The notes: generated by a model not told the origin, from the sequence alone. A stretch of 64,000 bases of DNA from Macrostomum hystrix (GCA_950097015.1 CATNEN010000025.1:1488001-1552000), one strand, 5' to 3'. Positions 4,450-52,436 are shown, counted from the first letter of the stretch. Numbers and translations: made by a program.

Positions 4450-4950
4450 CATTCCCTGTCTTATCTCTCCCGTGTCTTATCTCACCCCTGTCTCATCTCT
4501 CCCCAGTCTCATATCTCCCCTATCCCATCTCTCCCCTGTCTCATCTCTCCCCTATCCCATCTCTCCCCTATCTCATCTCTCCCGTGTCTTATCTCACCCC
4601 TGTCTCATCTCTCCCCAGTCTTATATCTCCCCTATCCCATCTCTCCCCTGTCTCATCTCTCCCGGGTCTTATCTCACCCCTGTCTCATCTCTCCCCAGTC
4701 TCATATCTCCCCTATCCCATCTCTCCCCTGTCTCATCTCTCCCCTGTCTCATATCTCCCCTATCCCATCTCTCCCCTATCCCATCTCTCCCCTGTCTCAT
4801 CTCTCCCATGTCTCATCTCTCCCCTGTCTCATCTCTCCCCCTGTCTCATCTTTCCCCTGTCTCATCTCTCCCCTGTCTCATCTCTCCCATGTCTCATCTC
4901 TCCCCTGTCTCATATCTTCTCTCATCTCTCCACTTTCATCTCTCCCCTGT
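4450..4950. repeat. ~16-bp pyrimidine-rich minisatellite (CCCCTGTCTCATCTCT)n
   Basis: Tandem imperfect copies. Confidence 0.9.
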
Positions 4951-5484: not shown

Positions 5485-6640
5485 TCATTTGCGAGCGCCG
5501 CGGCCACCCCCAGAGGCCCTGCATAAGGCTGAGCAGTTAAATGTGGCATAAAAAGATACTTAAGACTCTCCAGCTGTTTATCATGTGAAGCACTGTGAGC
5601 GCTTAATTGGGTCCGCAGACAGTTGAGAGTTGAGTTTTAGTATGTACTCGTAGATTCTACTCAACTATGCCTGACAAGCAGCGGCTGCCAGCTGCTCAGA
5701 GAAATAAAAAATTATAGCACTTTTGTTTCTCTTTTTCGTGTTGTGAAGGATAGGAAAGTACAGTTACCCTTAATTTTTATAGCTTTTATAATTAGTACAA
5801 ATTCGCAGACAAAACTTGAGGTTTGAAAAGATAAAATAATGCCAAAGAATGCAAGCACTATTAAACCTATCTAGAATACCTGATAGTTCCTAGAATTCCC
5901 GACAATTCCTAGAATACCTGATAGTTCCTAGAATACCTGACGATTCCTAAAATACCAGACAATTCCTAGAATACCTGACAATTCCTAGAATACCTGACAA
6001 TTCCTAGAATACCAGACAATTCCTAGAATACCTGACAATTCCTAGAATACCTGACAATTCCTAGAATACCTGACAATTCCTAAAATACCAGACAATTCCT
6101 AGAATACCTGACAATTCCTAGAATACCAGACAATTCCTAGAATACCTGACAATTCCTAGAATACCTGACAATTCCTAGAATACCTGACAATTCCTAGAAT
6201 ACCTGACAATTCCTAAAATATTTTAAAATTCCTAGAATTCGCGACAATTCCTAGAACACTCGAAAATTCCTAGAATACCCGACAATTCAAAGAATTTATC
6301 ATGTTTATCATGTGAGCGCTTAATTGGGTCCGCAGACAGTTGAGAGTTGAGTTTTAGTATGTAGAATTCTACTCAACTATGCCTGACAAGCAGCGGCTGC
6401 CAGCTGCTCATTTGCGAGCGCCGCGGCCACCCCCAGAGGCCCTGCATAAGACTGAGCAGTTAAATGTGGCATAAAAAGATACTTAAGATTCTCCAGCTGT
6501 TTATCATGTGAGCGCTTAATTGGGTCCGCAGACAGTTGAGAGTTGAGTTTTAGTATGTAGATTCTACTCAACTATGCCTGACAAGCAGCGGCTGCCAGCT
6601 GCTCAGAGAAATAAAAAATTATAGCATTTTTGTTTCTCTG
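5485..6640. repeat. Locally duplicated ~200-bp unit (5485-5730; repeated at 6300-6640) bracketing a 20-bp satellite
   Basis: Near-identical blocks GAGCGCTTAATTGGGTCCGCAGACAG...GCTGCCAGCTGCTCA at ~5597, ~6314 and ~6510; block CATTTGCGAGCGCCGCGGCC at ~5486 and ~6408. Confidence 0.85.
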
Positions 6641-6770
6641 ACAATTCCCCGACAATTCCTAGAATACCCGACAATTCCTAGAATACCCGACAATTCCTAG
6701 AATACCTTACAACTCCTAGAATACCTTACAATTCCTAGAATACCCGACAATTCCTAGAATACCTTACACT
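5865..6770. repeat. 20-bp minisatellite (AATTCCTAGAATACCTGACA)n in two blocks, 5865-6290 and 6640-6770
   Basis: Direct tandem copies. Confidence 0.92.
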
Positions 6771-6815
6771 TACTTAGCATACTTAGCATGTGGAATGCTG
6801 TCATAGACAACACAG

Positions 6816-7496
6816 TGTCCGGCTCCGTTCCAGCTCGACCCCGAGACGCGGCTGTGCCTGTACTTCTACAACGGATCGGAGAGCTTCGACTGGTGCACCG
6901 CAAACCACCGTTGTGCCGCGATGGGCGGTGAGCTGCTCAACTCGCCGGAGTCGCTGTCCCTGTTGATGTCCTCGAATCTGTCCAAGATCAACTTCGTTTA
7001 CGACATGTGGCTGGGGCTCAGTGACCTGGCATCGGAGGTGAATCTCAGTCGAGCCGGCTGGCAGAGAATCAACGGTGGAGGGATCTTCCCAAAGAATGAC
7101 TCAATGTGGTTACCAGGAGAGCCGAATGGCGGCAGTGCTCAGAATTGCGGACGAATCTATCGCCAGGGCTTTGCTCTGAGCGATACGCCCTGTACTCTGC
7201 TGCGCGGCTTCATCTGCCAGTTCGTGGAGCCGACTGCTGCCAGCAAGTCGGCCGGACTCTGGACTCGGACTGACTTCAAGAACAACCGAACTGACGCATA
7301 CTACTGTTACAGTGAGCTGCAGGGAGCGGACTCACTGAACACCTGCCTGATCAGAGCCTCCCTGTGTGGCAGCAGCTGCCGCGGCGCTCTGTACAACAGC
7401 AAGCTGGGCGCCTGCCGCCTGCTGCAGTTCGCCGACGCTCCGGTCGACCCGTCGATCGAGAGCAACCCCGACTGGATCAAGCTGGCCAGGGACTGA
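6816..7496 (+). pseudogene. C-type lectin + PAN/apple gene copy 1; 5'-truncated with no signal peptide, remaining frame intact
   Basis: Frame CPAPFQLDPETRLCLYF...MWLGLSD...EPNGG..QNC...FICQ...CLIRASLCGSSCRGALYN..CRL is open from 6816 to 7496. An in-frame TAG lies just upstream (6804-6806) and there is no leader homologous to copies 2-4. Confidence 0.75.
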
Positions 7497-7993
7497 CCTT
7501 TTTGCATCAGTTAGCCTCGCTAAAAGATAAACTGAGACTGAGACTTTAGAATAATGAACAATGAGAGTGTTTGGTTATGTGTTCGCAGTTGTTTCTGAAA
7601 ACACCAACTTTTTGCGATAATTATTACATTACAGCTTGAGAAGTCAACATTTTTTCTCTTTTGTTTCGAGACTAGCCCGGATTGTTAGGAAAATGTGTAT
7701 GAGACATTGCTTGATGAATAGATGAATTTTGCGCCCAAGCTCAAAACTCGAAAGTACGCTAAAAGACCACTGGCCTGCAGCAGACCCTAGACAATTATCC
7801 TATACAAGACGAAGGGATTGGGGTCGCTGCGGGAACGACGCATTGTTTGAGCTGCACAACGAGTTCCAGAATTCAGAGGTTTCTCTGTCGTCAACCCTGG
7901 TATCAACATTGCTGAAGGCACTAACGAGAACATGGCGTCATTTTTGTTAATCTTTTTGACAGAATATCTTATAAACCGCCTTTGTATCAGCAC

Positions 7994-9338
7994 TAGGGGT
8001 GTTCGGGGTTCGGGGTTAGGTCGGGGTTCGTGGTCGGGATTAGGGGTCGGGGTTCGGGGTCCCGATGAATGTTCGGGATGGGGTTCGGGGTCCCGATGAA
8101 TTTTCGGGATGGGGTTCGGTGTCCCGATGAATGTTTGGGATTTGTTTCCGGGTCCCGATGAATGTTCGGGATGGGGTTCGGTGTCCCGATGAATGTTTGG
8201 GATGGGGTTCGGTGTCCCGATGAATGTTTGGGATGGGGTTCGGTGTCCCGATGAATGTTTGGGATGGGGTTCGGTGTCCCGATGAATGTTTGGGATGGGG
8301 TTCGGTGTCCCGATGAATGTTTGGGATGGGGTTCGGTGTCCCGATGAATGTTTGGGATGGGTTCGGTGTCCCGATGAATGTTTGGGATGGGGTTCGGTGT
8401 CCCGATGAATGTTTGGGATGGGGTTCGGTGTCCCGATGAATGTTTGGGATGGGGTTCGGTGTCCCGATGAATGTTTGGGATGGGGTTCGGTGTCCCGATG
8501 AATGTTTGGGATGGGTTCGGTGTCCCGATGAATGTTTGGGATGGGTTCGGTGTCCCGATGAATGTTTGGGATGGGGTTCGGGGTTCCAGATAAATGTTCG
8601 GAATCGGGGCTCGGGACGGGATTTTGGACCGGGATTTCGGGGTTTCGCAAATTTTCTGAATTCCCATAGAACTATGAAAAAATCCTTATGAATTAGCTTT
8701 TTTTCGTTTTTAACGTGATCGCTTAAGGCATATGACGCTTAAATTCAAAGCTTTATTTAATGCTTTTCTTGTGCACGTGCATAATACAATACATACTTTA
8801 CATGACTGACTTGGCTTTTGAGACGTGCCGTCCATAAACTGCGATGACTATCAAGTCAAAAAGAGTTTTCTAGCTTATTTAAACTCGTTAACTATTACTA
8901 TATAGCTAGCTTTAAACTATATTTTTTTACTTAGGGTATAGTATTTGTGCTATTACTACTGTTATTTTCTATAATTAAGTTAATATGTTTTTAAGGTATT
9001 GTTTCTTAGAAAATGTTTTTTAATCTTAAGAATCGTAAGAAATCCCCTATTAATGCCCCCAGTTCACTATTTGATTCACTATTGGAAAAATAACAAGATA
9101 ACAAATGAAATGCAACATGCCTTAAATTAATTTCACATTAATTTTAAGTTGAACTGAAACAGGCTAATAGTAGTAAGTAGCCGTCAATACCACTTTTTAT
9201 TTCATCTATTGCTTACTTCGGGGTTATCGGGGTTCGGGGTCGGGATTAGGGTTCGGGATGGGTTCGGGGTTCGGGGAAAGATGTTCGGGATCGGGTTAAC
9301 CCCGAACCACGAAAAAAATGCCATCCCGAACATCCCTA
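7994..9338. mobile_element. Non-autonomous hAT-type DNA transposon (MITE-like, 1345 bp) with an internal 31-bp tandem array
   Basis: TIRs TAGGGGTGTTCGGG / CCCGAACATCCCTA. 8-bp TSD ATCAGCAC (7986-7993) / ATCTGCAC (9339-9346). Single-copy empty site ATCTGCAC at 17667-17674 in the paralogous flank. No transposase ORF. Confidence 0.9.
8075..8590. repeat. 31-bp minisatellite (GATGAATGTTTGGGATGGGGTTCGGTGTCCC)n inside the hAT element
   Basis: Tandem copies; source of the 31-aa periodic ORFs. Confidence 0.93.
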
Positions 9339-9881
9339 ATCTGCACAAATATATGAATTTTTCTAGCCGTGAAAGAATCCGACTGAGATGCTGAGAAGAC
9401 TGACAAGTTTATTGGCATGGTTCTGTTCACGGGCATTGGCCAATGACAATAGAGACCGGCTATTTCGGGTATCAATGTCTGTATCAACAGCCATATCCTC
9501 AATATCCTGAATAGCCGGTATTTATATTTACATTAACAGCAAGCTGACGATACTCCGCGCACGATTTATTGTTTTAATTCTAGAGAATACAGAAAAAGTG
9601 CATTGATGCTACAGTCGTCGTTAGCCACATTGGTCAGCCTTGTCCTAACAAGAATGCCGCTGTTTAGTCGGCGTTTTCAAAGACGCGAAGCACTTCACTA
9701 AGAGCGCAAAGAGAGCCAGTACATGCATGTCCGAATTCATGTTCGGTACTGAGTTGAAGACAATGCTGGAATGTAGGCAGGGGAGAAATAGTGTGGTATT
9801 TCTACTGTTAAAGTGAAGCAGGCCTCGTTTTGGGTTTTACTGATGTCCCAGAGGTAGCTGAAAGCGTTGCTAGTACTGAGC

Positions 9882-10114
9882 AGCTGTTTTGCCTGGTTGG
9901 AGCGTCCGACTCACGACTTGAAAGTCATGAGTTCGATTCCCGACTTGATTGTAACAATTTGTGTCCTTAGCAAGACAGCCGTTAAATGGTTACCAGCATT
10001 AGCTGGTGTAATTGGCGTGGGTATTGGGGTAGCGGACTGAACAGCCGTAAACAGCCTTCAGATGCGCCGCGCAATAGCTGCGGCTGTGATGTCGGCTGCA
10101 CATCTGGCCCAATC
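9882..10114 (+). mobile_element. tRNA-derived CORE-type SINE, copy A
   Basis: A-box-like TGGTTGGAGCG and B-box GAGTTCGATTCC; CORE-like GTGTCCTTAGCAAGAC...TAAATGGTTACC; 3' part GCCTTCAGATGCGCCGCGCAATAGCTGCGGCTG is shared with copies B-D. Confidence 0.8.
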
Positions 10115-10415
10115 ACCGTAGGTGTATTCAATTATTATTAATATCCTTACAATTACTATAATAATTTGAATATGACTATAAACAATCTGCTTGGCTGTGT
10201 AGAATCTGAAACGTCTTTATCTAGTCTCTCCAGCCTTCAATTCTTTCCCACTACTTGTCGAATGCTAAATTGGCCTTAATTGAGTGATGTTGATGTAAAC
10301 GCATTTCTATCGGCATCTCAATGTTTTTCAATCAAGAAAAAGAGCAACCCAGACTGGCTCAAGTTTCAGCGTTGGCTGAGTCCTAAGCTTCAAAAGGAGG
10401 AATCTGTCTAGTGAT

Positions 10416-11350
10416 TCCTTTCCTGCTTGTGCAGGCACTGGACTGGGTGCTGAGGATCGGCCTGCCCAACCCAGACGACGGCTTCCTGCTGAGAAGGCGC
10501 ACGAGTCGGCGGCACCCGGAGAAGCGGCTTTCCGTTCTGGGCTACACGGATGACCTCGCGCTACTAACATCGACGGCCGAAGGCGCTCAGCGGCTGCTGG
10601 ATGGCCTGACGAAGGCAGCATCGCAGGTCGGCCTCATGCTGAACTCGCGGAAGACGGTCATCATAACGGTGCTCTCTGACCTGCCTGCCGAGATCAATTA
10701 TCGAGACGCTGCCGGGGATCCAGTCAGGCGTACCCGCTGCCAGTGGTTCTTGCACCTCGGTGGCCTCGTGCCGGACGTTGCCAACGACCTGGTGAGGCGA
10801 TGTGGACTGGCCTGGGCCGCATTTCGCTCTGTGCGCTCCGTGCTCCAATCTGAGGCCCTTGACGACGGGGTCAGGGCTCGGTTGTTTCAGGCAGTAGTTG
10901 AGACTGTCATGCTGTATAACGCCGAGACCTGGACGCTGACGGACGCCTTGGAGAGGCAGGTGGACGCTGCGCGGGCGGCGTTCGGGGTGCGCAGCGGCAC
11001 AGGCAGCGAGATCGATGCCGCGCTCTACGCAAGGGCGCGCCTGACGCGGCCTTCTGACCTGCTGCGCGGGCGACGACTTCGACTGGCTGGCCACGTCATG
11101 CGGTCGGAGGCCCGCTGCCCTGAGCCACAACACGACGTGCTGCTGCTCAAGCTGCAGGGACCGCGCAGGTGAGGCCAAGGGCGAACGGCGAGATTTCCTG
11201 ACCGGCTTCTGCGTGATACTGGCGCCCGTGACCAAGCTAGCGGGTGTGACTTTTTGAGGTCGTCGGCCCAGAGACGCGCTCTCTGACTTCTCCCCCTTTC
11301 TGGCCACTGTGTGGCTGGTGGGAGCAGTCCTTTGTTGTTGTTATTGTTGT
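10416..11350 (+). mobile_element. 5'-truncated non-LTR retrotransposon (RTE-like RT C-terminal part), decayed
   Basis: PFLLVQALDWVLR...RRHPEKRLSVLGYTDDLALL...YNAETWTLT...RRLRLAGHV; premature TGA at 11170; short 3' UTR and (TTG)n tail at ~11330-11352. Confidence 0.9.
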
Positions 11351-11598
11351 TGCTGTTTCGTATGCAGCGAAGCATTGAAAATAAATATTACCGTACGAGA
11401 AATTCCAGAGGTACTGCATAAGTGCAGACTCGATAATTCATACAAGTTGCATCAGTAATGTTTTGTATGAATTAATTAATTAATAATTGATTACACCTGC
11501 CCCAATTGGGTCTCTGTCTCTGTCTCTGTCTCGGTCTCTGTTAAAGAAAGGGCAGTGACACACAAAGTGCTCAGCATCTTCGTTGTCGTACTCACAGA

Positions 11599-14100
11599 AT
11601 GGGCAGAGTTCACTCTCAAGGTCGCCCCGGAGGAAAGGAAACAGTGCCTGGCGAGTCTGTGCAGGTCTTTGTCGATGACATTCTGGTGACGGGCAAGACG
11701 CTGCAGCAGCATCACCAGAACCTGATCAATGTCCTTCAACGACTGCAGGAGGCGGGTCTGCGGCTGAACAAGGACAAGTGTGAGTTCTTCCGCGACTCAG
11801 TTGAATACTTAGGCCATCGAATCGACAGCAACGGTCTCCGGCCACTAGCGGAGAAGGTGACGGCAGTGCAGGATGCGCCGCCACCCACGGACTGCAGTCA
11901 GCTGCGAGCCTACCTAGGGATGCCGACCCACTACGGAAAGTTCTTGCCGCACCTGTCGACGGTGGTCGCTCCGCTGAATCAGCTGTTGATGAAGAATGCG
12001 CTCCTGCTAGAGTCTCCTGTACTCATGCACTACGACGCCAAGCTGCCGCTGCGTCTGGAATGCGACGCCAGCCCGTACGGACTAGATGTGGTGCTGACTC
12101 ATCGAGTGGACGGCGAGGACAGGGCGATCGCCTTCGCCAGCCGCAGCCTAACAACGACTCAAAAGGGCTATTCACAGCTGGACAAGGAGGCGCTCGCGAT
12201 CATGTTTGGCTTGCAGCGCTTCCATCAGTTTCTGCAAGGCCGCAAGTTCGTCATCGTCACCGACCACAAGCCGCTCCTGGGTCTCCTCGGCGAGCACAAG
12301 GGCATTCCGGAGCACGCGGCGGCGCGCATGCAGCGCTGGGCGATTCGCCTAGCCAACTATGACTAATCGCTGGAGTTCAGGCCCACCAGCAAGCACGCCA
12401 ACTGCGACTCGCTGTCCCGCTTGCCGCTGGCCAGGCAGTTCGAAGAGGAGCCAGCGCTCTGCTGCTGGACGAGGAGACTGGATCCGCCATCACGGCTCAG
12501 GTGGTGGCCCGGCACACTCGTTCGGACGCCCTCCTAGGCCGGGTGCTTCGATGCCTGCAGACGGGCGCTCCAATGGCTGCCGCTGAGCTAGTCGACTTCG
12601 TAAGGCGCCGAGACGAGCTGAGTGTGGAGCAAGGCTGCGTGCTGTGGGGATCCCGCGTCGTGCCGACGGCCCTGCGACAAGGCGTGGTGGATGAGCTGCA
12701 CCAGGCACACCCAGGCATCAACCGCATGCGAGCTCTGGCCCGCAGCTATGTCTGGTGGCCAGGATTGGACAAGCAGCTGGAGGCGGCCGTCAAGTCCTGC
12801 CGGATCTGCGCCCTCAACCAGGCTGACCCACCCAAGGCGCCGGTGCAACCCGTGGCCGTTTCCGTCAGAGCCGTGGGCGCGGCTACATCTGGACTTCGCC
12901 GGTCCGGTTAACGGCCGCACCTACCTGGTGATCGTAGACGCCTTCAGCAAGTGGCCGGAAGTTTTCCAAGTGCACAACACGACGTCTGCGGCCACGATCG
13001 ACCGGCTCCGCGAGCTCTTCGCCAGACTGGGCATCCCCCGAGTGCTGGTCTCTGACAACGGTGCGCAGTTCGCCTCTGCGGAGTTCACGGAGTTCACCAG
13101 GCGCAACGGAATCCGCCATATCTTCTCCGCGCCGTTCCACCCTGCTACGAACGGCCAGGCGGAGAGATTCGTGCAGGTGCTCAAGCGACACCTCCTCAAG
13201 AGCGGGCACTCGACGGCAGCACTGCAGCAGATGCTGATGTCATGCCGCAACACGCCGCACTCAATCACCGGCGACGCTCCCAGCCAGCTGCTCATCAGCC
13301 GCAAACTGCGCAATCGGCTCGACCTGCTGATGCCATCGCTGGTGAGCAACATGCAGCAGCGCCATGAACGCCAGGTGGAGCAACAGCCGCAGGCGCGCGA
13401 GTTCCAAGCCGGCAACCGAATACTACTGCGCGACTTCATCTCCAACGCAAGGACTGGCGGCGGAACCCGCTGGGCCTAGGGCACCGTCGTGTCCGCCGGG
13501 TCCCGCAACTGCGACGTCGAGGTCGGCGGCGCCCTCTATCGGCGGCACACTGACCAGCTGCTGACGAGCTCGCTGCCGGATGCTACCCTGGAGCCACCGG
13601 CCAGAATCGCTGATGAGCCGCCGCTGCCGCCCACCGAGCCAAGCGGAGGCAACGGCAGCAACGACGCGCCGCCGGATGCCGCGGTCGCCGAAGCCGCTGA
13701 CAGGTCAGCCAGCCCGACCAGGCGCTACTCTCAGCGTCGGAGGCAGCCGCCTGAACGTCTGCAGCTTTGATGATTGACTTGACTCTGACTCTGATTGCAT
13801 AACGAACTTTGGGGATGCTTAGAACCTTAGGGGGGAGATGTCGGATAGCTTAGCAAAAGTATTATTTGCGCGCCACTCTATAACAGCTAGTTTATTGTCA
13901 TTCCAATACTCGCTATTTGCTATCTGCATGGCTATAGTTCACGTGCACCCATGTCACCCCACTGTGCTGTTTTTAGATTTCCAATGCTTACTTTCTCTCA
14001 CTGATGCAAGGCGCTGTAGCACCCACCCCTAATCTCCTAACAATGCTGAGTCAGCCATTGAGTCGTACGAGTACAATAAATATGGCTTAATTAGGGTAGA
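11599..14100 (+). mobile_element. Decayed Ty3/Gypsy LTR retrotransposon (Mag/K02A2.6-like pol: RT end, RNase H, integrase) with PPT and start of the 3' LTR
   Basis: Motifs VFVDDILVTG, EYLGHRI, ECDASPYG, TDHKPL, HHCC zone (LHQAHPG...C..C), LHLDFAGP, DAFSKWPEV, SDNGAQF and PATNGQAERF. It carries an in-frame TAA at 12364, several frameshifts and a deletion in the RT-RH tether. PPT AGGGGGGAGA at 13829-13838 is followed by TG. The LTR end and 5' LTR were not found. Confidence 0.92.
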
Positions 14101-14199
14101 CGAAGTGAGTCGCGAAATTTCAAGCTCGTGTTCCATTTAATCACGTAAAAACAATTTTTTTTAAATGCGAACAAGAGAAACGGAACGCGGGCATTGAGT

Positions 14200-14458
14200 A
14201 ACAAAAGTGCAACTTAATTTAAAGAAGCGGTCGCTTTTTCTAACAGAGTTCAAGATCGTCAGACTTCCTCGAATCAATCACCTGGCCCACTTGCTGCCAT
14301 GTGCTGCTCAAATGGTTCCAACAAGCGGCTCTGCACGCCAGACTCGATTTAATCCACGATTGGAGAACCTCCTTGGGCAATCACCTTCTCAAGACGCTCA
14401 ATCTAGAAGTCAAGTCGGTAGCGACACGCTTCTTGAGATCCAAGGAATAGCTCGACAT
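14200..14458 (-). mobile_element. Probable Tc1/mariner-IS630-type transposase N-terminal remnant
   Basis: Minus strand MSSYSLDLKKRV...LSVLRR*LPKEVLQSWIK resembles the YSLDLR.RV start of the HTH region; interrupted by stops; no DDE domain or TIR seen. Confidence 0.4.
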
Positions 14459-15036
14459 TTTGTGACAACTTGGGGTGACAGAAATCCGCGGATTGAAAAC
14501 GAAGCTTTCGAAATAAAAAGGTGAACAGCATGAGTCCATTTTGCATATCAGGGTTAAAATTCCCGGCAGAAGTTGGGCCATAGTCATATTATAAAAATGA
14601 TGCTTTAAATTACCGGAGTATTTCAAACTCTCGGAAAGCAAAGCCAGCAAGATTCTGTCCGGATACTTTTTGCGCACCCGGTATTAGCCAAGCGTTTTTC
14701 TTAAATTAGCTATGTATATTACATGCAATCAACATCCATCGCACAGCTATTAACGCTCTCTGCAGAAATGATTTGGTAGATGTAGAAAACAGGAAATGTA
14801 AACGCTCGCATATCGTATGTTTGACTTGTCAAGCTAGCTAAAAGCTAATAGGATTTTCAAGAAAAAAATCCACCGACAGATTTCACATCTTCTTAAAAGC
14901 ATAGTTTTTGTAGTTATAGCTACGAAAAAACACAGAAATGGGATATAATCGCATTGCCTTCTAGTTCTACTCCCAACGAGACGTTTCAGAGGAGCTCACC
15001 TGAATAAATTCACCTCCATCAAGCCACAGAACTGCA

Positions 15037-15786
15037 ATGATTCTCACGCCTGTGACTACTATGTTGCTGCTCTCTACCAGCGCTGCGCTAGCGCAGGCCA
15101 TCCCATGTCCGGCTCCGTTTCAGCTCGACCCCGAGACCCGGCTGTGCCTGTACTTCTACAACAGGTCGGAAGAATTCGACTGGTGTACCGCAAACCACCG
15201 TTGTGCCGCGATGGGCGGTGAGCTGCTCAACTCGCCGGAGTCGCTGTCCCTGTTGATGTCCTCGAATCTGTCCAAGATCAACTTCGTTTACGACATGTGG
15301 CTGGGGCTCAGTGACCTGGCATCGGAGGTGAATCTCAGTCGAGCCGGCTGGCAGAGAATCAACGGTGGAGGGATCTTCCCAAAGAATGACTCAATGTGGT
15401 TACCAGGAGAGCCGAATGGCGGCAGTGCTCAGAACTGCGGACGAACTATTAGCCAGGGCTTTGTTCTAAGGGACACGCGCTGTACTCTGCTGTGCGGCTT
15501 CATCTGCCAGTTCGTGGAGCCGGCTGCTGCCAGCAAGTCGGCCGGACTCTGGACTCGAACTGACTTCAAGAACAACCGAACTGACGCATACTACTGTTAC
15601 AGTGAGCTGCAGGGAGTGGACTCACTGAACACCTGCCTGATCAGAGCCTCCCTGTGTGGCAGCAGCTGCCGCGGCGCTCTGTACAACAGCAAGCTGGCCG
15701 CCTGCCGCCTGCTGCAGTTCGCCGACGCTCCGATCGACCCGTCGATCGAGAGCAACCCCGACTGGATCAAGCTGGCCAGGGACTGA
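15037..15786 (+). CDS. Secreted C-type lectin domain + PAN/apple domain protein, copy 2 (249 aa, intronless)
   Basis: Hydrophobic signal peptide MILTPVTTMLLLSTSAALAQA; long-form CTLD cysteines, WLGL, EPN, QNC, FICQ; C-terminal C-x6-C-x3-C..LYN.....C.L PAN-like pattern. Confidence 0.9.
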   Translation: MILTPVTTMLLLSTSAALAQAIPCPAPFQLDPETRLCLYFYNRSEEFDWCTANHRCAAMGGELLNSPESLSLLMSSNLSKINFVYDMWLGLSDLASEVNLSRAGWQRINGGGIFPKNDSMWLPGEPNGGSAQNCGRTISQGFVLRDTRCTLLCGFICQFVEPAAASKSAGLWTRTDFKNNRTDAYYCYSELQGVDSLNTCLIRASLCGSSCRGALYNSKLAACRLLQFADAPIDPSIESNPDWIKLARD

Positions 15787-16430
15787 TGGGTTTATTAGAT
15801 TTTCGTTACTCGTTACGTTACATAATTTCGTCGAAAGATTTGATTTTTTTAGTTCTCCTGAGTTTTACGACAACCGTCGTTCACTTGACGCAATTAGCGA
15901 AGCGAACTTGAGGCGAACTTTCTAGCTTGAAGGAATGTGAATTCGATGCTTGAAAATTCAGCTCAGCAAATGGCTTTAACGTTCTCTCTTTCTTCTGGTC
16001 GATTTGGTACTCGTAGTATAAAAGCTATCGCATTTAAAATTAAAAAATAATTGCGAGCGCCAACGAAGCTATACTGAAAGTCAAACAGCACTGGTTGGCA
16101 GCTATAGCTAATGCATCTATTTGGGAAAAGAAACTTTTCTTTCCTGACACTGCCTGCGTGAGAATATTTTGCAACAGGCAACGGAGACGAGAAAAAAGCG
16201 ACAATCCAGTAAAAAGTAGTGTACTCGTAAGTTTGTCAAATAAGGGGAGTACCGACATTTTTCTGGATATATTATCGGCGGTTTATGCAGACAGACTTTA
16301 ACTAGCTAGAAAGCTTCATCCTGTTGTCGTGGAAACAGCTCTAGGAAAATATAGAAAATAATACGACTCTCCTCTCCTGCGAGCTCAAATTCATGTAATT
16401 GCTTAGCGCGAGTTGTCAATCACCAGCTGG

Positions 16431-17177
16431 ATGGCGCGGGTCGTTAGCTTCGCATTCTTGCTGCTCGCTGGATTTTGCACGCTGTCACAGGCCTTCCAGT
16501 GTCCAGAACCATTTCAGCTGGACACCGAGACGCAGCTATGCCTGTACTTCAATCAGAGCAACAGCTACGACTGGTGTGCCGCTAACAGGCAGTGTGCTCA
16601 GATGGGCGGTGAGCTGCTCAACTCACCCGATGCAATCAGCCGACTGATTAATTCTAACTTGTCCAACATCAACTACGCCGATGACATGTGGGTTGGAGTC
16701 AACGACCTGGCGTCGGAGTCCGGCAATTCCAAGGCCGGCTGGCAGCTGGTTAACGGTGGTGGCATCCTGCCAACGAATGACAGCCTGTGGCAAGGCGTGG
16801 AGCCCAACGGTGGAGACAGCCAGAATTGCTTGCGTGCTAGAAAACTGTCACTAAAGCTCTGTGACACGCCCTGTACTCAGCTGCGCGGCTTCATCTGCCA
16901 GTTCGTGGAGCCGGCTGCTGCCAGCAAGTCGGCCGGACTCTGGACTCGGACTGACTTCAAGAACAACCGAACTGACGCATACTACTGTTACAGTGAGCTG
17001 CAGGGAGCGGACTCACTGAACACCTGCCTGATCAGAGCCTCCCTGTGTGGCAGCAGCTGCCGCGGCGCTCTGTACAACAGCAAGCTGGGCGCCTGCCGCC
17101 TGCTGCAGTTCGCCGACGCTCCGGTCGACCCGTCGATCGAGAGCAACCCCGACTGGATCAAGCTGGCCAGGGACTGA
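16431..17177 (+). CDS. Secreted C-type lectin + PAN/apple protein, copy 3 (248 aa from ATG 16431, intronless)
   Basis: Signal peptide MARVVSFAFLLLAGFCTLSQA; CTLD with WVGVND, EPN, QNC, FICQ; PAN-like tail identical in protein to copy 1. Confidence 0.9.
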   Translation: MARVVSFAFLLLAGFCTLSQAFQCPEPFQLDTETQLCLYFNQSNSYDWCAANRQCAQMGGELLNSPDAISRLINSNLSNINYADDMWVGVNDLASESGNSKAGWQLVNGGGILPTNDSLWQGVEPNGGDSQNCLRARKLSLKLCDTPCTQLRGFICQFVEPAAASKSAGLWTRTDFKNNRTDAYYCYSELQGADSLNTCLIRASLCGSSCRGALYNSKLGACRLLQFADAPVDPSIESNPDWIKLARD

Positions 17178-19825
17178 CCTTTTTGCATCAGTTAGCCTCG
17201 CTAAAAGATAAACTGAGACTGAGACTTTAGAATAATGAACAATGAGAGTGTTTGGTTATGTGTTCGCAGTTGTTTCTGAAAACACCAACTTTTTGCGATA
17301 ATTATTACATTACAGCTTGAGAAGTCAAAATTTTTTCTCTTTTGTTTCGAGACTAGCCCGGATTGTTAGGAAAATGTGTATGAGACATTGCTTGATGAAT
17401 AGATGAATTTTGCGCCCAAGCTCAAAACTCGAAAGTACGCTAAAAGACCACTGGCCTGCAGCAGACCCTAGACAATGATCCCATACAAGACGAAGGGATT
17501 GGGGTCGCTGCGGGAACGACGCATTGTTTGAGCTGCACAACGAGTTCTTAAATTCAGAGGTTTCTCTGTCGTCAACCCTGGTATCAACATTGCTGAAGGC
17601 ACTAACGAGAACATGGCGTCATTTTTGTTAATATTTTTGACAGAATATCTTATAAACCGCCTTTGTATCTGCACAAATAAGTTAATTTTTCTAGCCGTGA
17701 AAGAATCCGATTGAGATGCTGAGAAGACTGAGAAATGCTGAGAAGTCGGAAATTTGTTATGATATTAAGAAGCTTTCGCAAGCGAAGTTTGGCCTTTTAG
17801 GGTCGGTTAAAATCAGTATGATAGCAGCATTGACCAGTTACCCTGACACTTAACAGTAAAACGATCACGGGGAGTAGTTCATCAAATACCCTCATTTTTC
17901 CTTTACTGTATCTCCTAAAATATCCAACCAAATCCAGAACTCGAACTAACATTTTCCGCTCTCTCAGATGAAGCAACTTCCAGTATCACACAACATCGAA
18001 ATCGTCTAGATATTCAACGATTCTCGTCGGATGTCTGGTGGCGAAAACCACTAAAATCGGAGAAATATATCTGCTCGCAAAATTCATAATATAACCATGT
18101 CGGCTATCATTTTTGATAATTTTGAACAGATTTCTTAGTTCATTGTTACATTTTTAACCAATATGGATTTGCCAAAGAGGCTTATACCGAGAAATGTTAG
18201 TTGTCCTTGTCATCAACAATCGCTGAGTACCTCAAAGATGCTGACGTCGGACGACTTTGAAATTTAGCTTTTCGTAAAGCAGGGAAAAATTTGAACCATA
18301 CGAGCGTATGGTGAACTTTCACGAAAATCGGTCATTCGGTTTGGCTTTCCCCGTGGTGCTTCCCACTGGGGAAAATATACTAGTACGCGTGGTCTTTGTA
18401 CTGTAAACTGGTTTAGTCAGCCTTAACCTTGTTTCAGCAAAAAGGAGAAGGTTATTAGTTGAATGAAATTTATAAAAAGCTATTAACAAAAATTGGATAA
18501 AAGCATGTCTTCTCGTAAGCTATTGTTATTTACTTTTTGAGAACTTGCGAGTTTGATGCGGCACAACTTCTTAAACCACCTGCCACCTGTTCGTTGGTAC
18601 AGGTATTCACAAGCCTAATTATCTTTGTACCAAATGAGCACATACTGGTTTTGACACATCTGATCGAAAAAACTAGGGATGATATTGGAAAACGGCATCA
18701 TAATTAGGTGGATGGGTCGATTCGGTTTGAAAACTACTGTATAGAAACAAATATTGCTCAAACGAAAACCTTTTTAAGTCCAAGGGTCTTATAATTGTAC
18801 TTAAAATGCACTTTTATTTACTTATTACCGAATGAGAAAGTATTTTCCCGTGCATTAATTATGGATTGTCGTATGAGAAGAAACAAGAGTTTTAGTTTGG
18901 GCACACCTCATCTGTCAAACGATCTAGTTAACTGTTTTCAGAATAAACCGAGAATTTCAGATGAAAATCATAACAGAACTAGATTTTGAACTATTGATAG
19001 CTTCAACTCAACGCTAAAACTTTAGTTCCTTACCGGGGCCATGATAATTTCTTTCGCGAGCTCAACTGTTTAGAAGCAGAGCGGGTTGCAGATCTGGTAC
19101 GTAGTCAACCATGCACTAGTAGGTAGTAGTGCTACCTTAGTAGTCCTTGATTTTGTTAGTTGGTCTTTCTTGTAGCAAGTTGTGGTTGTGCGCAAAGTGG
19201 CATTGCACAACATTCGCACCTTGAGGGCCATCCCCCAAGGCAGAGTAAGAGTGTACACTGCCGGAGGATGAGAAAGTCAGGGCAGATGTACACATCTGTG
19301 TGCGTGTGTGCTCAGGAGTCAGCGGAATGGGCAGAATTGCCTCCTCGCTGGTTGCGGGTCTAGTGTCACCTAACGATGAGCCAATTACCACAGCCCTCCT
19401 GCTATTACTAATAGTATTATAAGCATATCTAGCGTGTGAGTCCGCAGCAGGATTTTACTATTGAACGTGTCAATAATTCATGGCATTCATCGTGCCAGTT
19501 GATGCCAGAATGACTTTGAAAAGCTCTCGGTCCAGATGGGAACTAAAGGAATTAAAAAAGTGACAAAGGAAAAATTGCTTTTAATGCGTAGCAGAAAACT
19601 GACAAAACGAGTGACGAAATTCTCAACGAGCCGTTCTCTTCAACTGCTGCTAATGCAATTCATCGACTTGACAATCGCCATAGCAACAGGTGTTTCGCAG
19701 CTATACAAATTATTCCTAAAGGAGAAGAGCTGGCACAAATGAGTTTGCCTTTCCAGAGCTCTTGTGATGCAACTAGCAATATAAAAGTCCATTTCAGAAG
19801 CTGGAAAGACGCCCCAATTTGCATA

Positions 19826-20558
19826 ATGCAATTCATTCAGGCCCTCATGGTCGTTCTGCTGCTCCCCGCCTGCGGTGCGCTGTCGCAGGCCGTTCTGCCG
19901 TGTCCGGCTCCGTTTTGGCTGCTCCCCGCCACCCAGCTGTGCCTGTACATCGAGGCCAATCAGAGCCTCAACTGGTGCGCCGCCAACCGTCGCTGCGCCG
20001 AGATGGGCGGCGAGCTGATCAACTCGGAGGAGTCAATCGCGGCCGTGCTCTCATCGAATCTGAAGGCGGCAGGCTACACTACCAGAATGTCGGAGGTTGG
20101 TACCAGCAGGACGGGTTGGCAGAGTTAACGGCAGTGGAGTTCTACCAACCAATAGCTCGCTGTGGTACATAACGGAGCCAAGTGGAGGCAGGGGCGAGCA
20201 TTGCTTGAGGATTCTCATTTCATCTTCTTATTGGCTCTGTGACTCGAATTACATCAGCTTCATCTACCAGTACGTGGCGCCTTCAGCAGCAGAGAAGGCT
20301 TCAGTTGGCGACTTCTGGAAGCTCGCCGGATTGGCCAGAACTCGAAACGACGACTACACATATTACTGAGGCGACGAGCAGCAGGGACTGGCCTCACTGA
20401 ACACCTGCCTGATCAGAGCCTCCCTGTGTGGCAGCAGCTGCCGCGGCACTCTGTACAACAGCAAGCTGGGCGCCTGCCGCCTGCTGCAGTTCGCCGACGC
20501 TCCGGTCGAACCGTCAATCGAGAGCGACCCTGACTGGGTCAAACTGTCTAGGGACTGA
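19826..20558 (+). pseudogene. C-type lectin + PAN/apple copy 4, pseudogene
   Basis: Signal peptide and CTLD start are intact (MQFIQALMVVLLLPACGALSQAVLPCPAPF...). Then the MW.G..DL segment is deleted, there is a frameshift near 20125, CTLD cysteines are lost (FIYQ), and TGA occurs at 20367. TATA-like TATAAAAG lies ~45 bp upstream. Confidence 0.85.
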
Positions 20559-26900: not shown

Positions 26901-29900
26901 TCCAGTATATCCTCCAGCAAAGCCTCATATAAAATCAAATCATTTGCCTCCAGCAAAGCATCCAGCAAAGCATCCAGCAATGCATTTAGCAAAGAATCTA
27001 GCAAAGCATCTAGCAAAGCATCTAGCAAAGCATCCAGCAAAGCATCCAGCAAAGCATCCAGCAATGCATCTAGCAAAGCAACCAGCAAAGCATCCAGCAA
27101 TGCATCCAGCAAAGCATCCAGCAATGCATCTAGCAAAGCATCCAGCAATGCATCTAGCAAAGCAACCAGCAAAGCATCCAGCAATGCATCTAGCAAAGCA
27201 ACCAGCAAAGCATCCAGCAATGCATCTAGCAAAGCATCCAGCAAAGCATCCAGCAAAGCATCCAGAAAAGCATCCAGCAATGCATCTAGCAAAGCATCTA
27301 GCAATGCATCCAGCAAAGCATCCAGCAAAGCATCTTGCAAATATTCTAGCAAAGCATCTAGCAAAGCATCCAGCAAACCAACCAGCGAAGCATCTAGCAT
27401 GAACTGCAACCAAAAAGAAGCTGATAGAATGGTCTCGGATTTTTTCTGCAAAAGAACTTGAGCACTTTAATTTACATGCCGGTTGGGCAAACCCCAAGCT
27501 CAAGACCTCCCCCCCCAAGTCCGCGCTGACTGGCAGGTGTTAAAAAACTGCAATCTGGTTCCATGGAGTAAGAAGGCTGGTATCCAGGCCCCTGCAAATA
27601 GGAACGGTGAAGTGCATTCTATCTGACTGGTGCAGCGGTTTTTTGACAACACCCCCACCCTTGGGCGAGCTATTTGTCTCTGCAAATTCTTGGACCATTT
27701 TATCGATTTGTTTTCATTGCTTTTATTCTCTTGGCTGAATAAATAACCGCTTGTATTTACACGGATCAATAGAAAAAGAATAATAAGACACAAAGCCTGC
27801 TCATTCATTGTTTCATTTATCGAGTAAAGTACAATGTCAGTCAGAGATTCTGCGATCTCTCCGGCATCTGAGATTAAAGCTGCGACAACAAACAAGTTCA
27901 GTGCCTGGACCATGGGATAATACAGAATGGGATGGGACGAGATGGGATACGATAAGATGGGATGGGATGGGATGGGATGGGATGCGATCGGATAGGATGG
28001 GATGCGATGGGATTGGATGAGATGGGATGAGATTGGATAAGATGGGATGGGATGAGATGGGATGGGATGGGATGAGATGGGATTGGATGAGATGGGATGA
28101 GATGGGATGGGATGGGATGAGATGGGATTGGGTGAGATACGATAAGATGGGATGGGATGGGATGGGATGGGATGCGATCGGATAGGATGGGATGCGATGG
28201 GATTGGATGAGATGGGATGAGATTGGATAAGATGGGATGGGATGAGATGGGATGGGATGGGATGAGATGGGATTGGATGAGATGGGATGAGATGGGATGA
28301 GATGGGATTGGATGAGATGGGATGGGATTGGATGAGATGGGATGGGATAGGATGAGATGGGATGGGATAGGGTGGGATGAGATTAAGTGAGATTTGATAG
28401 CTAGATAAAATCATACTTGAAGTAGGAGAGGTGGAGCAAAGCTTTGTTTACTAATATTATCAGGCAGTTAATAACCATGAGAAATGGTCGCGCTGTGACG
28501 AAAGTGTATTCTCCCGTGTGTTTATTTTGATTTACTCAATTTAAACAGAAATTATTGAAGCCAGAGTGACCCAGTTGTCTGTTAGATATTTGAGGCCAAA
28601 CTGTGGGTAAGCCGCATGCCTATCATAGGAGCCCAAATGCTAGGCAAGATGATCGCCCCTCATGGCAAAAAGATCCCTGGGAAGAAGATGCTCAAACTCG
28701 CTGCTGCTGCTCAAGTGTGCTCGCCAGCGGATGAGAAACTACTTAACGCCTCAGCGGCCTCCTAGAATTGCAGTTCGCCTAGCGAGCTGGTTCTGAGGCA
28801 AAGGTTTTTCATGAAAAACCGCTTCAAGCCGTCACACCACACTCATGATTGCAGAGGGCGCGAGAGAGTTAAGCTTTGGCATAAAACTACTTGGCCGGCC
28901 TCATAATCGAGTCCCACTTATTGGGGTCCAGGAGCATCGCAGCTTCCGGAATTGGGAAGCAAACTTATAACTTTGCTGCTGTTTGAACTTTGTTAGTTTT
29001 TATCGATCCGGATTCAGATTAGAAAACAGCTTGGGCCTAGCATTCGCTGTGAAAAGATTAACGCTGCGACACTGAAGCTGGGCATACAGCAAGGGATTTA
29101 GGAGAACCTCAATGTACTTTTATGACAAACAATATGGATGGAAGTGGGATGGATAGGAGTGGGATGGATGGGAGTGGGATGGATGGGAGTGGGATGGATG
29201 GGAGTGGGATGGATGGGAGTGGGATGGATAGAAGTGGGATGGATGGGAGTGGGATGGATGGGAGTGGGATGGATGGGAGTGGGATGGATGGGAGTGGGAT
29301 GGATGGGAGTGGGATGGATGGGAGTGGGATGGATGGGAGTGGGATGGATGGGAGTGGGATGGATGGGAGTGGGATGGATAGAAGTGGGATGGATGGGAGT
29401 GGGATGGATGGGAGTGGGAGGAATGGGAGTGGGATGGATGGGAGTGGGATGGATGGGAGTGGGATGGATGGGAGTGGGATGGATGGGAGTGGGATGGATA
29501 GAAGTGGGATGGATGGGAGTGGGATGGATGGGAGTGGGAGGAATGGGAGTGGGATGGATAGAAGTGGGATGGATGGGAGTGGGATGGATGGGAGTGGGAT
29601 GGATGGGAGTGGGATGGATAGAAGTGGGATAAATAGGAGTGGGATGGATGGGAGTAGGATGGATAGAAGTGGGATGGATGGGAGTGAGATGGATGGGAGT
29701 GGGATGGATGGGAGTGGGATGGATAGAAGTGGATGGATGGGAGTGGGATGGATGGGAGTGGGATGGATGGGAGTGGGATGGATGGGAGTGGGATGGATGG
29801 GAGTGGGATGGATGGGAGTGGGATGGATGGGAGTGGGATGGATGGGAGTGGGATGGATGGGAGTGGGATGGATGGGAGTGGGATGGATAGAAGTGGGATG

Positions 29901-32900
29901 GATGGGAGTGGGATGGATGGGAGTGGGAGGAATGGGAGTGGGATGGATAGAAGTGGGATGGATGGGAGTGGGATGGATGGGAGTGGGATGGATGGGAGTG
30001 GGATGGATAGAAGTAGGATAAATAGGAGTGGGATGGATGGGAGTAGGATGGATAGAAGTGGGATGGATGGGAGTGAGATGGATGGGAGTGGGATGGATGG
30101 GAGTGGGATGGATAGAAGTGGATGGATGGGAGTGGGATGGATGGGAGTGGGATGGATGGGAGTGGGATGGATGGGAGTGGGATGGATAGAAGTGGGATGG
30201 ATGGGAGTGGGATGGATGGGAGTGGGATGGATAGAAGTGGGATGGATAGAAGTGGGATGGATGGGAGTGGGATGGATGGGAGTGGGATGGATGGGAGTGG
30301 GATGGATAGAAGTGGGATGAATAGGAGTGGGATGGATGGGAGTAGGATGGATAGAAGTGGGATGGATGGGAGTGGGATGGATGGGAGTGTGATGGATGGG
30401 AGTGGGATGGATAGAAGTGGGATGGATGGGAGTGGGATGGATGGGAGTGGGATGGATGGGAGTGGGATGGATAGAAGTGGATGGATGGGAGTGGGATGGA
30501 TGGGAGTGGGATGGATTGGAGTGGGATGGATGGGAGTGAGATGGATGGGAGTGGGATGGATGGGAGTGGGATGGATAGAAGTGGATGGATGGGAGTGGGA
30601 TGGATGGGGGGATGGATGGATGGGTGTGTAACAGAAGGATCTAGATTCAAAGCGGAGTTTCATAGCTGTCTGTGTACAGTGAGCAGCTGTGATGGAATTC
30701 AGCAGCCAGTGAATGAATGACTCGTTAGGCAGTGAGGCAGTAGGTTTCAAGTGCGGATCAAGCATTACAAGTGGCCACGCGAACAGCCCTTGAGTACCAT
30801 CCAACTGGCGGGGGTGAGAAATTTGAGCAGAAAATGATAAAGCCAAGGAGAGCCGGAATTCGTTGGCAAATATGCTCGCGTAGGGAAATTTGTTGTTTGC
30901 CCCGATCAAACTTGGCCCCTTAGCTTGCAGTCCCACCTCCCTCCCATAGTGCAGACATCTCCTCACCATCCACTTTGCTGGCATCTTCTGAGACGCTGAC
31001 TACAGCTGATGAGGCCAATTCTAGATCCTGTACCATTCCTTCGCAGTGTTTCGATCCGCCTCACAAGCCTACTCGCGCACGGTCAGATCCCATTCCTGAT
31101 CTCATCCTCAGCCCGTCAAAGAATCCTTTCTACAGCAACGCGCGGCTCATTTTCCGGGGCTAGCTAGTCGATTTCTTTTCAATGCCATTTCAAATTAGGG
31201 AATTTTTGCTTTAGCTGACTGGTTTTTACGTGTCAAGCCGGTCAACTCAAATTGTGCTCGTCTTCATGAGCTCACTGTAATTAACGGAACTAGCCATCCG
31301 GAATTGCATTTCTAACTAAAAAGTGCATTCGAAGATTCTAAAGCTGTAATTAAATATTTAAATTATTCAAATGTGAAAGTAAATTCTCAAACTGAAACAG
31401 AAGAATGAGGGAACGGTAGGTAAATAGGGAGTGAGATGGTTGCGTGGAGTTAGGATTGTGGAGTGAGAAGTGTATGCAGTGAAGTATTGTAAAATGAGAC
31501 AGATTTGGAGTGAGGTGGGTGTGGCGTGAGGTGGTTGTGTAGTGAGGTGGTTGTGGAGTGAGGTGGTTGTGGGTGATGTGGTTGTGGAGTCAGGTGGGTG
31601 TGGCGTGAGGTGGTTGTGTAGTGAGGTGGTTGTGGAGTAAGGTGGTTGTGGAGTGAGGTGGGTGTGGCGTGAGGTGGTTGTGGAGTGAGGTGGGTGTGGC
31701 GTGAGGTGGTTGTGGAGTGAGGTGGGTGTGGCGTGAGGTGGTTGTGGAGTGAGGTGGTTGTGGAGTGAGGTGGTTGTGGCGTGATGTGGGTGTGGCGTGA
31801 GGTGGTTGTGGAGTGAGGTGGGTGTGGCGTGAGGTGGTTGTGGAGTGAGGTGGTTGTGGAGTGAGGTGGTTGTGGAGTGATGTGGTTGTGGAGTGAGGTG
31901 GTTGTGGAGTGAGGTGGTTGTGGAGTGAGGTTTTTGTGGAGTGAGGTGGTTATGGTGTGGAGAGGCTTGTTGCAGAATGGATGAAAATTATGCTTGTATG
32001 TCTTTCAGAGAATCGTCACTCAAAAAAGCATTTTTCAAAGCGATTTCAAAGCAGGATTAAAGTGTGCTCACCATCCTCATCCACTTGTCGCATCATGTCC
32101 TGCAGCTCATCGGCGCTCGGGAACTGACCCAGAGTCTTCATCACCTCGCCCAGCTCCTCGGCGCTGATGCTGCCGTCACCGTTCTTGTCGAACAGGGCGA
32201 AAGATTCGCGAATCTCTGCGCGGGAGGTTAAGAGTAAGACTATGCTCAAAGCTATAGACTGCTGAGCTGAGATAGGAGCCTGAGCACACGCACAGGAGAT
32301 ACGTACGCAGGCTGTCTACAGGTGCACATCAGCCTGATCAAGGACACTGGTTGCACATCAATCCTTCAAGCCTTCTTGCAGCAGCGAAGGAACCAGCTAG
32401 TATAAAAAAGTGCACAGCTCATACTCACCAGCCAGTTGACTGTCCGTCAGCTTCTTGGCCTGCAATCAATCAACACAATCATATGCGTGATGCTGAGTGA
32501 GTGAAGGTAAGAGATACTCTCAGTTGAGTTGATTCAGTTGAGAAATTCTGAATCAGGACAAGACAAAGTTCCCGCGGCTTATTTTATACACCTTTTTCAA
32601 TCCTCGATTTCTCTGCCTTTCACGACCCATTCAATCGACTTTCTACTTATATTGTTTGCTCTCTGGAATTGTCTAGAAATTTTCCCGCTCTCTGTGAAGC
32701 TCCGGTCCGAATCTCTGACTTCTATGAGAGTCTGCAAACAAAACGTCCCAACATTCTCCGCCCAGTTCCCATTTCCGATTTCCTGTGGAAAAACAGCATT
32801 GACTTAAACGCATCGAGGTATAACTGGTAGAAGAATTGCTGGCATTTTGAGCATATGTTGAGTCTTGTGGATGATTGGCATAGCGCCAAGAGGTCCTTGA

Positions 32901-52257: not shown

Positions 52258-52436
52258 TTCTACAAGCCCCATAGTCTAATACGCAGAGACCAGTTATATT
52301 CACATTGCACAAAAATGGTCTAAGAAATTGCAGATTGAATGTTATAATCGATAAAATGAAAGGACTCGTGTTTATAAAACGCAATTTTCGTATCCTAAAA
52401 TGATTTGAGAACTTCTTTGGTGCAAATTTCTTTCAG

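Follow-up and report, generated by a model that had tools for sequence, protein, structure and literature searches.

How can neighbouring genes carry 3′ coding ends that are nearly identical, at synonymous sites as well, and 5′ parts that have diverged to synonymous saturation? This question is raised by a cluster of four gene copies, here named c1–c4, in a 64,000-nt stretch of the genome of the flatworm Macrostomum hystrix (hereafter the window; contig C25:1488001–1552000 in a 220-Mb, 42-contig assembly, with positions counted from the window start). All four copies lie on the same strand and are intronless, and each encodes a C-type lectin-like domain (CTLD) and, C-terminal to it, a domain that we refer to as PAN/apple-like. 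Our analysis indicates that the locus is, in all likelihood, a small and partly decayed cluster whose patchwork was produced by interlocus gene conversion of the 3′ coding end, with c1 arising as a chimeric duplication. The four copies are as follows:

6797–7496, plus strand: c1, a 5′-truncated chimeric copy (gene fragment or pseudogene).
15037–15786, plus strand: c2, an intact intronless gene of 249 aa with a signal peptide, a CTLD with an EPN motif, a linker and a PAN/apple-like tail.
16431–17177, plus strand: c3, an intact intronless gene of 248 aa from its ATG, with the same architecture as c2.
19739–20558, plus strand: c4, a pseudogene of a second subtype.

The first-pass annotation had described four tandem, same-strand, intronless genes of signal peptide–CTLD–PAN architecture; the strand, the tandem order and the lack of introns stand, whereas the count of four genes does not, since c1 and c4 are defective. 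The intact copies are c2 and c3 only, each with an initiating Met, a hydrophobic signal peptide, a QCP/PCP motif at the start of the CTLD and the C-terminal Cys-containing domain. The ATG of c3 lies at 16431, and its open reading frame (ORF) as listed begins at a TTG at 16413. Because a satellite of 19-bp units directly precedes it, c1 has neither a start codon nor a signal peptide; its sequence begins inside the last signal-peptide codons, and a TAG stands at 6807–6809 within this remnant. The lesions of c4 comprise a 24-bp deletion of the WIGL-type CTLD core, a 2-bp deletion near 20123 that shifts the frame, and a TGA at 20367–20369. For the codon analysis, N was placed at the breaks of c4 so that the copy could be read through.

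The mosaic is evident in the two intact genes. The CTLDs of c2 and c3 share 59–61% protein identity, and their 90-aa tails differ at exactly three residues, which agrees closely with the split previously judged by eye (55–60% identity in the CTLD, about three residues in the tail). By the Nei–Gojobori method, synonymous divergence (dS) between c2 and c3 is 1.59 in the CTLD, 0.042 in the linker and 0.000 in the PAN core. Over the last 312 nt dS is about 0.015, and the linker and PAN core together contain a single synonymous difference in 64.5 sites, giving an approximately 100-fold contrast between CTLD and tail within one gene pair, and the CTLD synonymous sites are saturated (proportion of synonymous differences, pS, 0.66). 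The maximum chi-square breakpoint for this pair falls at the DTPC codons, with 135 differences in 366 positions to its left and 7 in 312 to its right. Both the maximum chi-square and the longest-run permutation tests give p≤0.0005 for c2–c3, c1–c3 and c3–c4, so the transition is as abrupt as had been claimed. The homogenised tracts are located as follows:

7182–7496, plus strand: tail tract of c1, comprising the CTLD end from DTPC, the linker, the PAN core and the stop codon.
15472–15786, plus strand: tail tract of c2, with the 7 differences to c3 in 312 nt; the identity stops at the stop codon.
16863–17177, plus strand: tail tract of c3.
20376–20558, plus strand: PAN-core tract of c4, with 93% DNA identity to c1–c3; the rest of c4 differs at about 40–48% of nucleotide positions.

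The tails of c1 and c3, likewise described earlier as nearly identical, differ at one of the 90 residues. Homology of flanks and repeats at the locus was assessed by self-BLAST. Between c2 and c3 no alignment was found upstream of the signal peptide, nor from the first base past the stop codon, and the shared segment is bounded on both sides, at DTPC in the 5′ direction and at the stop codon in the 3′ direction. Since these flanks cannot be aligned, the tail is a patch and not the product of a single crossover or of a recent whole-gene duplication. Furthermore, the G+C content at third codon positions (GC3) in c1–c3 is 0.91 in the PAN core versus 0.70–0.74 in the CTLD, as GC-biased conversion would give.

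In c4, homogenisation is confined to the last ~183 nt, which make up the PAN core, and the linker has diverged as much as the CTLD. Between c3 and c4, dS is 1.30 in the CTLD, 1.07 in the linker and 0.107 in the PAN core, and the maximum chi-square breakpoint coincides with the start of the PAN core. Closest to the cluster are L004 (C38:5142403–5146014) and L006 (C38:5794323–5797895), two c4-type copies that lie 650 kb apart on contig C38, show 82% DNA identity to c4 and are 98.5% identical to each other. In both, the same frameshift follows the first Cys pair of the CTLD and the invariant first Cys has been lost; they are therefore pseudogenes. The PAN cores of c4, L004 and L006 are 91–94% identical to that of c3 at the DNA level, with the same left edge. 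As dead copies carry the homogenised core, a mechanical process is favoured over selection acting on each copy. The PAN cores of L004 and L006 differ from each other by about eight non-synonymous and about zero synonymous changes.

Separate trees of the CTLD and the PAN region place the six copies of this subfamily in one clade in both cases. In the PAN-core tree, this clade has a long stem and tiny internal length, with paths of 0.013 for c2–c3 and 0.064 for c3–c4. By comparison, the internal paths of the clade in the CTLD tree amount to 0.66–0.89, with 0.69 for c2–c3. The PAN core of c4 is nominally nearer to c3 than to its own subtype (5.6% versus 7.1–8.6% divergence), a difference that involves too few sites for a claim. 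The CTLD distances from c4 to L004 and L006 were not used, since the frameshift of the latter two inflates them in the codon alignment.

The remaining copy, c1, combines the front of one neighbour with the back of the other. Its CTLD is about 93% identical to that of c2, and the locus therefore holds three CTLD types and not four. The sequence is c2-like up to ~7180 and c3-like from ~7189. Before position 7185, 120 informative site patterns agree with c2 and 5 with c3; beyond it, 1 sides with c2 and 6 side with c3 (Fisher p 4.8e-7). In keeping with this switch, the nearest relative of c1 is c2 in the CTLD tree (98/97 support) and c3 in the tail. The resemblance to c3 continues past the stop codon into one further segment:

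7497–7993, plus strand: 3′ flank of c1, copied from or shared with the c3 flank at 17178–17674 (98.4% identity, 8 mismatches in 497 bp).

This identity halts just short of a 62-bp repeat at 8049. Since it runs 497 bp into the flank, the c1–c3 tail patch is not bounded on both sides in the way the c2–c3 patch is. Within the CTLD, c1 and c2 share a 248-nt identical run that is flanked by stretches of 5–25% divergence. On its site patterns and flanks, c1 is a recent, truncated chimera of a c2-type CTLD and a c3-type tail.

The same asymmetry recurs across the family. The genome holds at least 130 matches to the family, and 65 intact paralogs were compared by the pS of their CTLDs and of their PAN cores, a pair being scored as discordant at PAN-core pS<0.1 with CTLD pS>0.3, and the reverse pattern being scored likewise. 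Twenty-four pairs, from seven clusters, join an identical tail to old CTLDs, and 21 of them connect genes less than 50 kb apart. The reverse pattern, a young CTLD with an old tail, was found in 0 pairs among the 65 intact paralogs. In a few pairs the CTLDs are somewhat more similar to each other than the PAN cores are (e.g., L022–L023, overall p-distance 0.036 versus 0.113), short of the reverse thresholds. For genes less than 50 kb apart, median pS is 0.43 in the CTLD versus 0.11 in the PAN core; for genes on other contigs or separated by more than 1 Mb, the values are 0.70 and 0.61, and the latter figure means that synonymous sites in the PAN core can diverge freely. On the 5′ side of the tracts, breakpoints spread across c3 residues 151–206, with concentrations where the last conserved CTLD strand lies and where the PAN core begins. 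On the 3′ side, by comparison, 11 of the 12 pairs checked have their tract edge no more than a few nucleotides from the stop codon, the exception being c1–c3. The cluster richest in tail homogenisation is found at C38:5.79–5.84 Mb (L053–L060) together with C38:5.14 Mb (L057); it contributes 15 of the 24 discordant pairs, some of which are about 0.65–0.70 Mb apart.

The domain assignments rest on profile searches and structural models. Pfam PF00059 (Lectin_C) matches c3 at 41.3 bits and c1 at 27.5 bits against a cut-off of 22.6, with c2 just under it at 20.2, and 22 of 23 family members are matched. A profile search of the PDB with the CTLD returned DC-SIGN (E 2.9e-11). An AlphaFold model of c3, built from a 23-sequence family alignment, has a predicted local distance difference test score (pLDDT) of 73.7, and Foldseek relates its CTLD to carbohydrate-recognition domain (CRD) 4 of the mannose receptor, DC-SIGN, mincle and CD23 (E 3e-7, probability 1.0, target template-modelling (TM) score about 0.7). 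The original CTLD call is therefore supported by both Lectin_C and the predicted fold. The PAN label fares differently. No Pfam PAN match was obtained on c1–c4 at E≤1, and PF00024 (PAN_1) was sub-threshold in 4 of 23 family members and never at its cut-off (best E 0.013); among relatives of the tail, P0004 (a Macrostomum lignano model) and the metagenome proteins P0005 and P0006 reach 19.1–21.3 bits against a cut-off of 21.4. An AlphaFold model of the 83-residue tail by itself has a pLDDT of 84.8, and its top VIA-align match is the plasminogen PAN domain (Z 8.5, 2.2 Å over 68 residues), followed by the HGF N-domain (Z 8.2), the TgMIC4 apple domain (6.9), SML-2 (6.8), MANEC (6.6) and the kallikrein apple domain (6.2). 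The top 20 matches, at Z 8.5 to 5.4, are nearly all PAN/apple domains, including the factor XI apple domain and an Eimeria PAN module, and Foldseek returned the same set weakly (E≥0.009). We accept an architecture of a CTLD plus a tail of PAN/apple fold, with the PAN assignment made by predicted structure and not by sequence; the earlier label is thus not upheld by Pfam and is upheld by the fold of the tail model.

Three Cys residues of the tail are invariant (C192, C205 and C228 of c3), C216 is a Cys in 31 of 65 genes, and C212 is an additional Cys in c1–c3. Ca2+ site 2 has five canonical ligands (Glu/Gln and Asn of EPN/QPD, a downstream Glu, and Asn and Asp of WND); as compared with DC-SIGN, c2 and c3 keep EPN and the last Asp, and the equivalent of E354 is Gln. 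At the WND Asn (DC-SIGN N365), c2 has Arg, c3 has Cys and c1 has Ser, and the Glu of EPN is kept in just 11 of the 65 family genes. Variability across the family is highest at c3 residues 127–136 and 141–158, which belong to the canonical ligand surface of the CTLD and where indels also occur, and the c1–c2 differences cluster in the same ligand-surface loop. Given these coinciding peaks in the alignment, a role of the ligand-surface loops in binding specificity is plausible.

The favoured explanation for these observations is as follows. Non-reciprocal copying between paralogs would repeatedly overwrite the 3′ end of the coding region, in tracts that would begin at a variable 5′ end, from the last conserved CTLD strand to the start of the PAN core, and extend to the stop codon, where homology ends. 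The CTLDs would have escaped such copying long ago and diverged to synonymous saturation under ordinary purifying selection. Duplication together with conversion or recombination would have made c1, with its c2-type CTLD, its c3-type tail and 497 bp of c3 flank. The cause may be a 3′-anchored polarity, with copying started near the 3′ end, or a self-maintaining island of homology; as an alternative to a 3′ start, tracts may be confined to the sole indel-free segment, which lies between the indel-rich linker and a non-homologous untranslated region (UTR). The products would be secreted glycan- or protein-binding molecules, whose PAN tail may serve shared docking or oligomerisation. Interlocus gene conversion had been proposed for this locus before, and the proposal is well supported by the approximately 100-fold dS contrast, the unalignable flanks, the switch of the nearest relative of c1 at ~7185, and the 24 versus 0 discordant pairs.

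Several points weigh against this explanation. We infer the conversion events, their direction and their rate from a single assembly. The stop-codon edge in 11 of 12 pairs is sharper than homology decay alone would give, and is not fully explained. In distant pairs the PAN core is little more conserved than the CTLD, so a simple homology island needs an extra assumption, e.g., intolerance of indels or a 3′ initiation site. For the origin of c1, reciprocal recombination or chimeric duplication would fit its sequence as well as conversion does. In addition, the canonical Ca2+/sugar ligands are incomplete, and "lectin" is here a structural label, with sugar binding putative.

Among the other explanations, one would give selection the leading part: a constant/variable system in which one PAN module is kept per cluster and diverse CTLDs are favoured, for immunity, mucus or adhesion, with conversion as the tool. 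We regard this as unlikely. It would account for an asymmetry that is strictly one-sided (24 versus 0 pairs) and recurs in seven clusters, and for a family variability that is highest on the canonical CTLD ligand surface, where the c1–c2 differences also cluster; however, CTLD dN/dS is 0.2–0.3, pseudogenes are homogenised too and half of the cluster is dead, and an indel-free PAN core would remain convertible without selection. Whole-domain CTLD dN/dS is 0.22 for c2–c3 and 0.33 for c1–c2, and this whole-domain measure gives no sign of positive selection on the CTLD in either pair. A swap of CTLDs from elsewhere was also considered and has no candidate donor in the assembly: none was found there for the head of c2 or c3, the next-best CTLDs being at most 56% identical and belonging to c4-type pseudogenes. 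The suggestion in the first-pass annotation of a constant PAN module with shuffled sugar-binding domains is thus not supported, as the CTLDs are old and under purifying selection and lack a donor. A diversifying system for immunity or adhesion is weakened as well, since dead copies are homogenised (c1, c4, L004 and L006) and the Ca2+/sugar ligands are partial. That the one-sided, 3′-anchored homogenisation reflects polarised conversion started near the 3′ end, maintenance by selection, or both, can be put forward only tentatively.

Reciprocal recombination (unequal crossing-over) with chimeric duplication, in place of patch-like conversion, is improbable as an account of the whole pattern. It suits c1, which is exactly a hybrid of a c2 front and a c3 back with the c3-like part reaching 497 bp into the 3′ flank, and which is flanked by satellites. 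By contrast, c2–c3 and 10 pairs in other clusters lose identity at the stop codon and have unrelated 3′ flanks, a pattern that a single crossover would not leave, and the 248-nt identical c1–c2 island has diverged sequence on both sides. The abundance of satellites and transposon remains in the region could point to an artefact of assembly or polishing, with tails homogenised by consensus polishing or c1 being a mis-joined haplotype. This is very unlikely, because the tails are not identical (2–22 differing sites per pair) and the pattern occurs in seven clusters, each with its own tail sequence. Furthermore, neither c2 nor c3 has the 5′ flank or the distal 3′ flank of c1, which is therefore not a haplotig of either. 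Tandem mis-assembly of haplotypes, against which the first-pass annotation had cautioned, does not apply to c2 and c3, which differ in both flanks and CTLDs, and is unlikely for c1. A recent tandem duplication, after which targeted hypermutation or strong positive selection altered the CTLD very rapidly and left the tail unchanged for want of time, would agree with tails that differ by just 0–2% and with a subfamily that is monophyletic in both parts, and is nevertheless highly improbable. The CTLD synonymous sites are saturated (pS 0.66), so that selection on the protein is not the cause; c2 and c3 cannot be aligned in either flank; the CTLD changes are of all kinds, indels included; and the CTLDs of c1 and c2 are 93% identical, showing that this domain is not intrinsically unstable. 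Purifying selection alone on a highly constrained PAN domain, with equal age along the gene, is scarcely credible. Many tail residues are invariant family-wide, as it would predict, yet tail dS lies about 100 times below CTLD dS in the same pair, PAN-core pS reaches 0.61 in distant paralogs, and the same core is kept in pseudogenes. Uniform synonymous divergence along the gene, which the first-pass annotation had named as evidence for such selection, is not what we observe (dS 1.59 in the CTLD versus ~0.015 in the tail).

How far does this family extend? A single-sequence search with c3 among 5.8 billion proteins found no homolog. A family profile search retrieved a Macrostomum lignano "C-type lectin domain-containing protein" (UniRef A0A1I8..., P0001) at E 1.2e-86, together with one metagenome fragment; P0001 is 42% identical to c3 and 59% identical to the best paralog of the M. 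hystrix genome. A profile of the tail gave 17 representatives at E≤0.001 among 1.84 billion proteins, and the three named ones among the five best examined are M. lignano models. The M. lignano models P0001, P0003, P0004 and P0007 belong to the same family, the last three with the same tail, and carry automatic annotations only; no close ortholog of the c1–c4 subfamily was found among the M. lignano models. In P0003, P0004, P0007 and P0009, the PAN tail is fused to a sodium:solute symporter, a guanylate cyclase or a globin, and these models are probably mis-merged predictions of neighbouring genes. The literature searched on Macrostomum and C-type lectins yielded only adhesion-protein and gut-gene papers that mention other CTLD proteins, and no description of this family. 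The earlier term "undescribed family" therefore holds in the sense of uncharacterised and fails in the sense of unseen, since the M. lignano models were automatically annotated as C-type lectin domain-containing proteins. So far we have found the family only in Macrostomum-type flatworms, and to judge from the searches it is large, intronless and lineage-restricted.

Region-limited concerted evolution is known in the rodent Ly49/NKR C-type lectin-like genes, in the MHC, in KIR clusters and in globins. Like these systems, the flatworm locus has tandem paralogs in which one segment is near-identical, at synonymous sites too, and another is anciently divergent; pseudogenes take part, and GC3 is raised in the converted part. 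Unlike them, the flatworm genes are intronless and belong to a CTLD–PAN family restricted to flatworms, and the converted tract is always the 3′-terminal domain, with its end at the stop codon. The FREPs of Biomphalaria and the Sp185/333 genes of sea urchins are clustered genes for secreted, recognition-type proteins with mosaics attributed to recombination or conversion. The M. hystrix cluster resembles them in its clustering, its secreted recognition-type products, its tandem-repeat flanks and its mosaic sequences, and differs in that its CTLDs are under purifying selection, with element-pattern mosaics and hypervariability not evident. With respect to structure, the predicted tail fold, a helix packed on a β-sheet with conserved Cys, is like that of the plasminogen and HGF N-domains, the kallikrein and factor XI apple domains, TgMIC4 and SML-2. 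In contrast to known PAN/apple domains, the flatworm tail falls below the Pfam threshold, has three invariant Cys with a fourth in about half of the genes, and occurs as a single copy C-terminal to a CTLD.

The surroundings of the cluster are rich in repeats and in remains of mobile elements:

5871–6782, no strand assigned: blocks of a 19-bp-unit satellite (5871–6295 and 6648–6782, with other sequence between them), reaching almost to the point where c1 is truncated.
8049–8614, no strand assigned: a 62-bp-unit tandem repeat, just past the end of the c1–c3 flank homology.
10411–13479, plus strand: degenerate retrotransposon remains between c1 and c2, with a G+C content of 55–62%.

The first two of these repeats bracket a 1.2-kb island that contains c1, and the 62-bp repeat yields long spurious minus-strand ORFs (7787–8667). 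The retrotransposon pieces comprise a reverse transcriptase fragment (10411–11172), a reverse transcriptase with RNase H (11599–12366), an integrase zinc finger (12501–12911) and an integrase core (12622–13479); since these domains sit in different frames, the element is broken. Just 3′ of c4, from 21314 to about 24000, lies a satellite of 22-bp units with more than 100 copies, 92–95% identity between units, a strong GC skew of 0.3–0.55 and a low G+C content of 0.35–0.37. A short-unit satellite that translates as a ...SHLS.VSSLP.LIS... repeat is present at 4454–4950 and also beside the lectin-family loci L004 and L005 on contig C38; it may be genome-wide and may promote ectopic exchange. Elsewhere in the window, kilobase-scale blocks at 28000–36000 and 52000–60000 show extreme strand asymmetry, with GC skew up to +0.69 or −0.67 and an AT skew of about 0.36 across 52–60 kb, and are presumably further satellites.

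Taken as gene conversion of the 3′ coding end, this locus offers a well-resolved and quantifiable case in which concerted evolution is limited to one domain, within a large secreted CTLD–PAN protein family. The kind of process is clean and familiar, indeed textbook, and is not a new diversity-generating system. For annotation, the consequence is that two of the four copies are dead. Whole-gene trees of the family are misleading, and its domains need separate analysis. The locus is also of relevance for studies of flatworm mucus, adhesion or innate recognition. If the one-sided homogenisation were due to polarised conversion started near the 3′ end, to selection or to both, a reading that we hold to be unlikely, each cluster would have its own "constant" PAN tail and distinct "variable" CTLD heads, which would amount to a germline constant/variable architecture for secreted recognition proteins in a flatworm.

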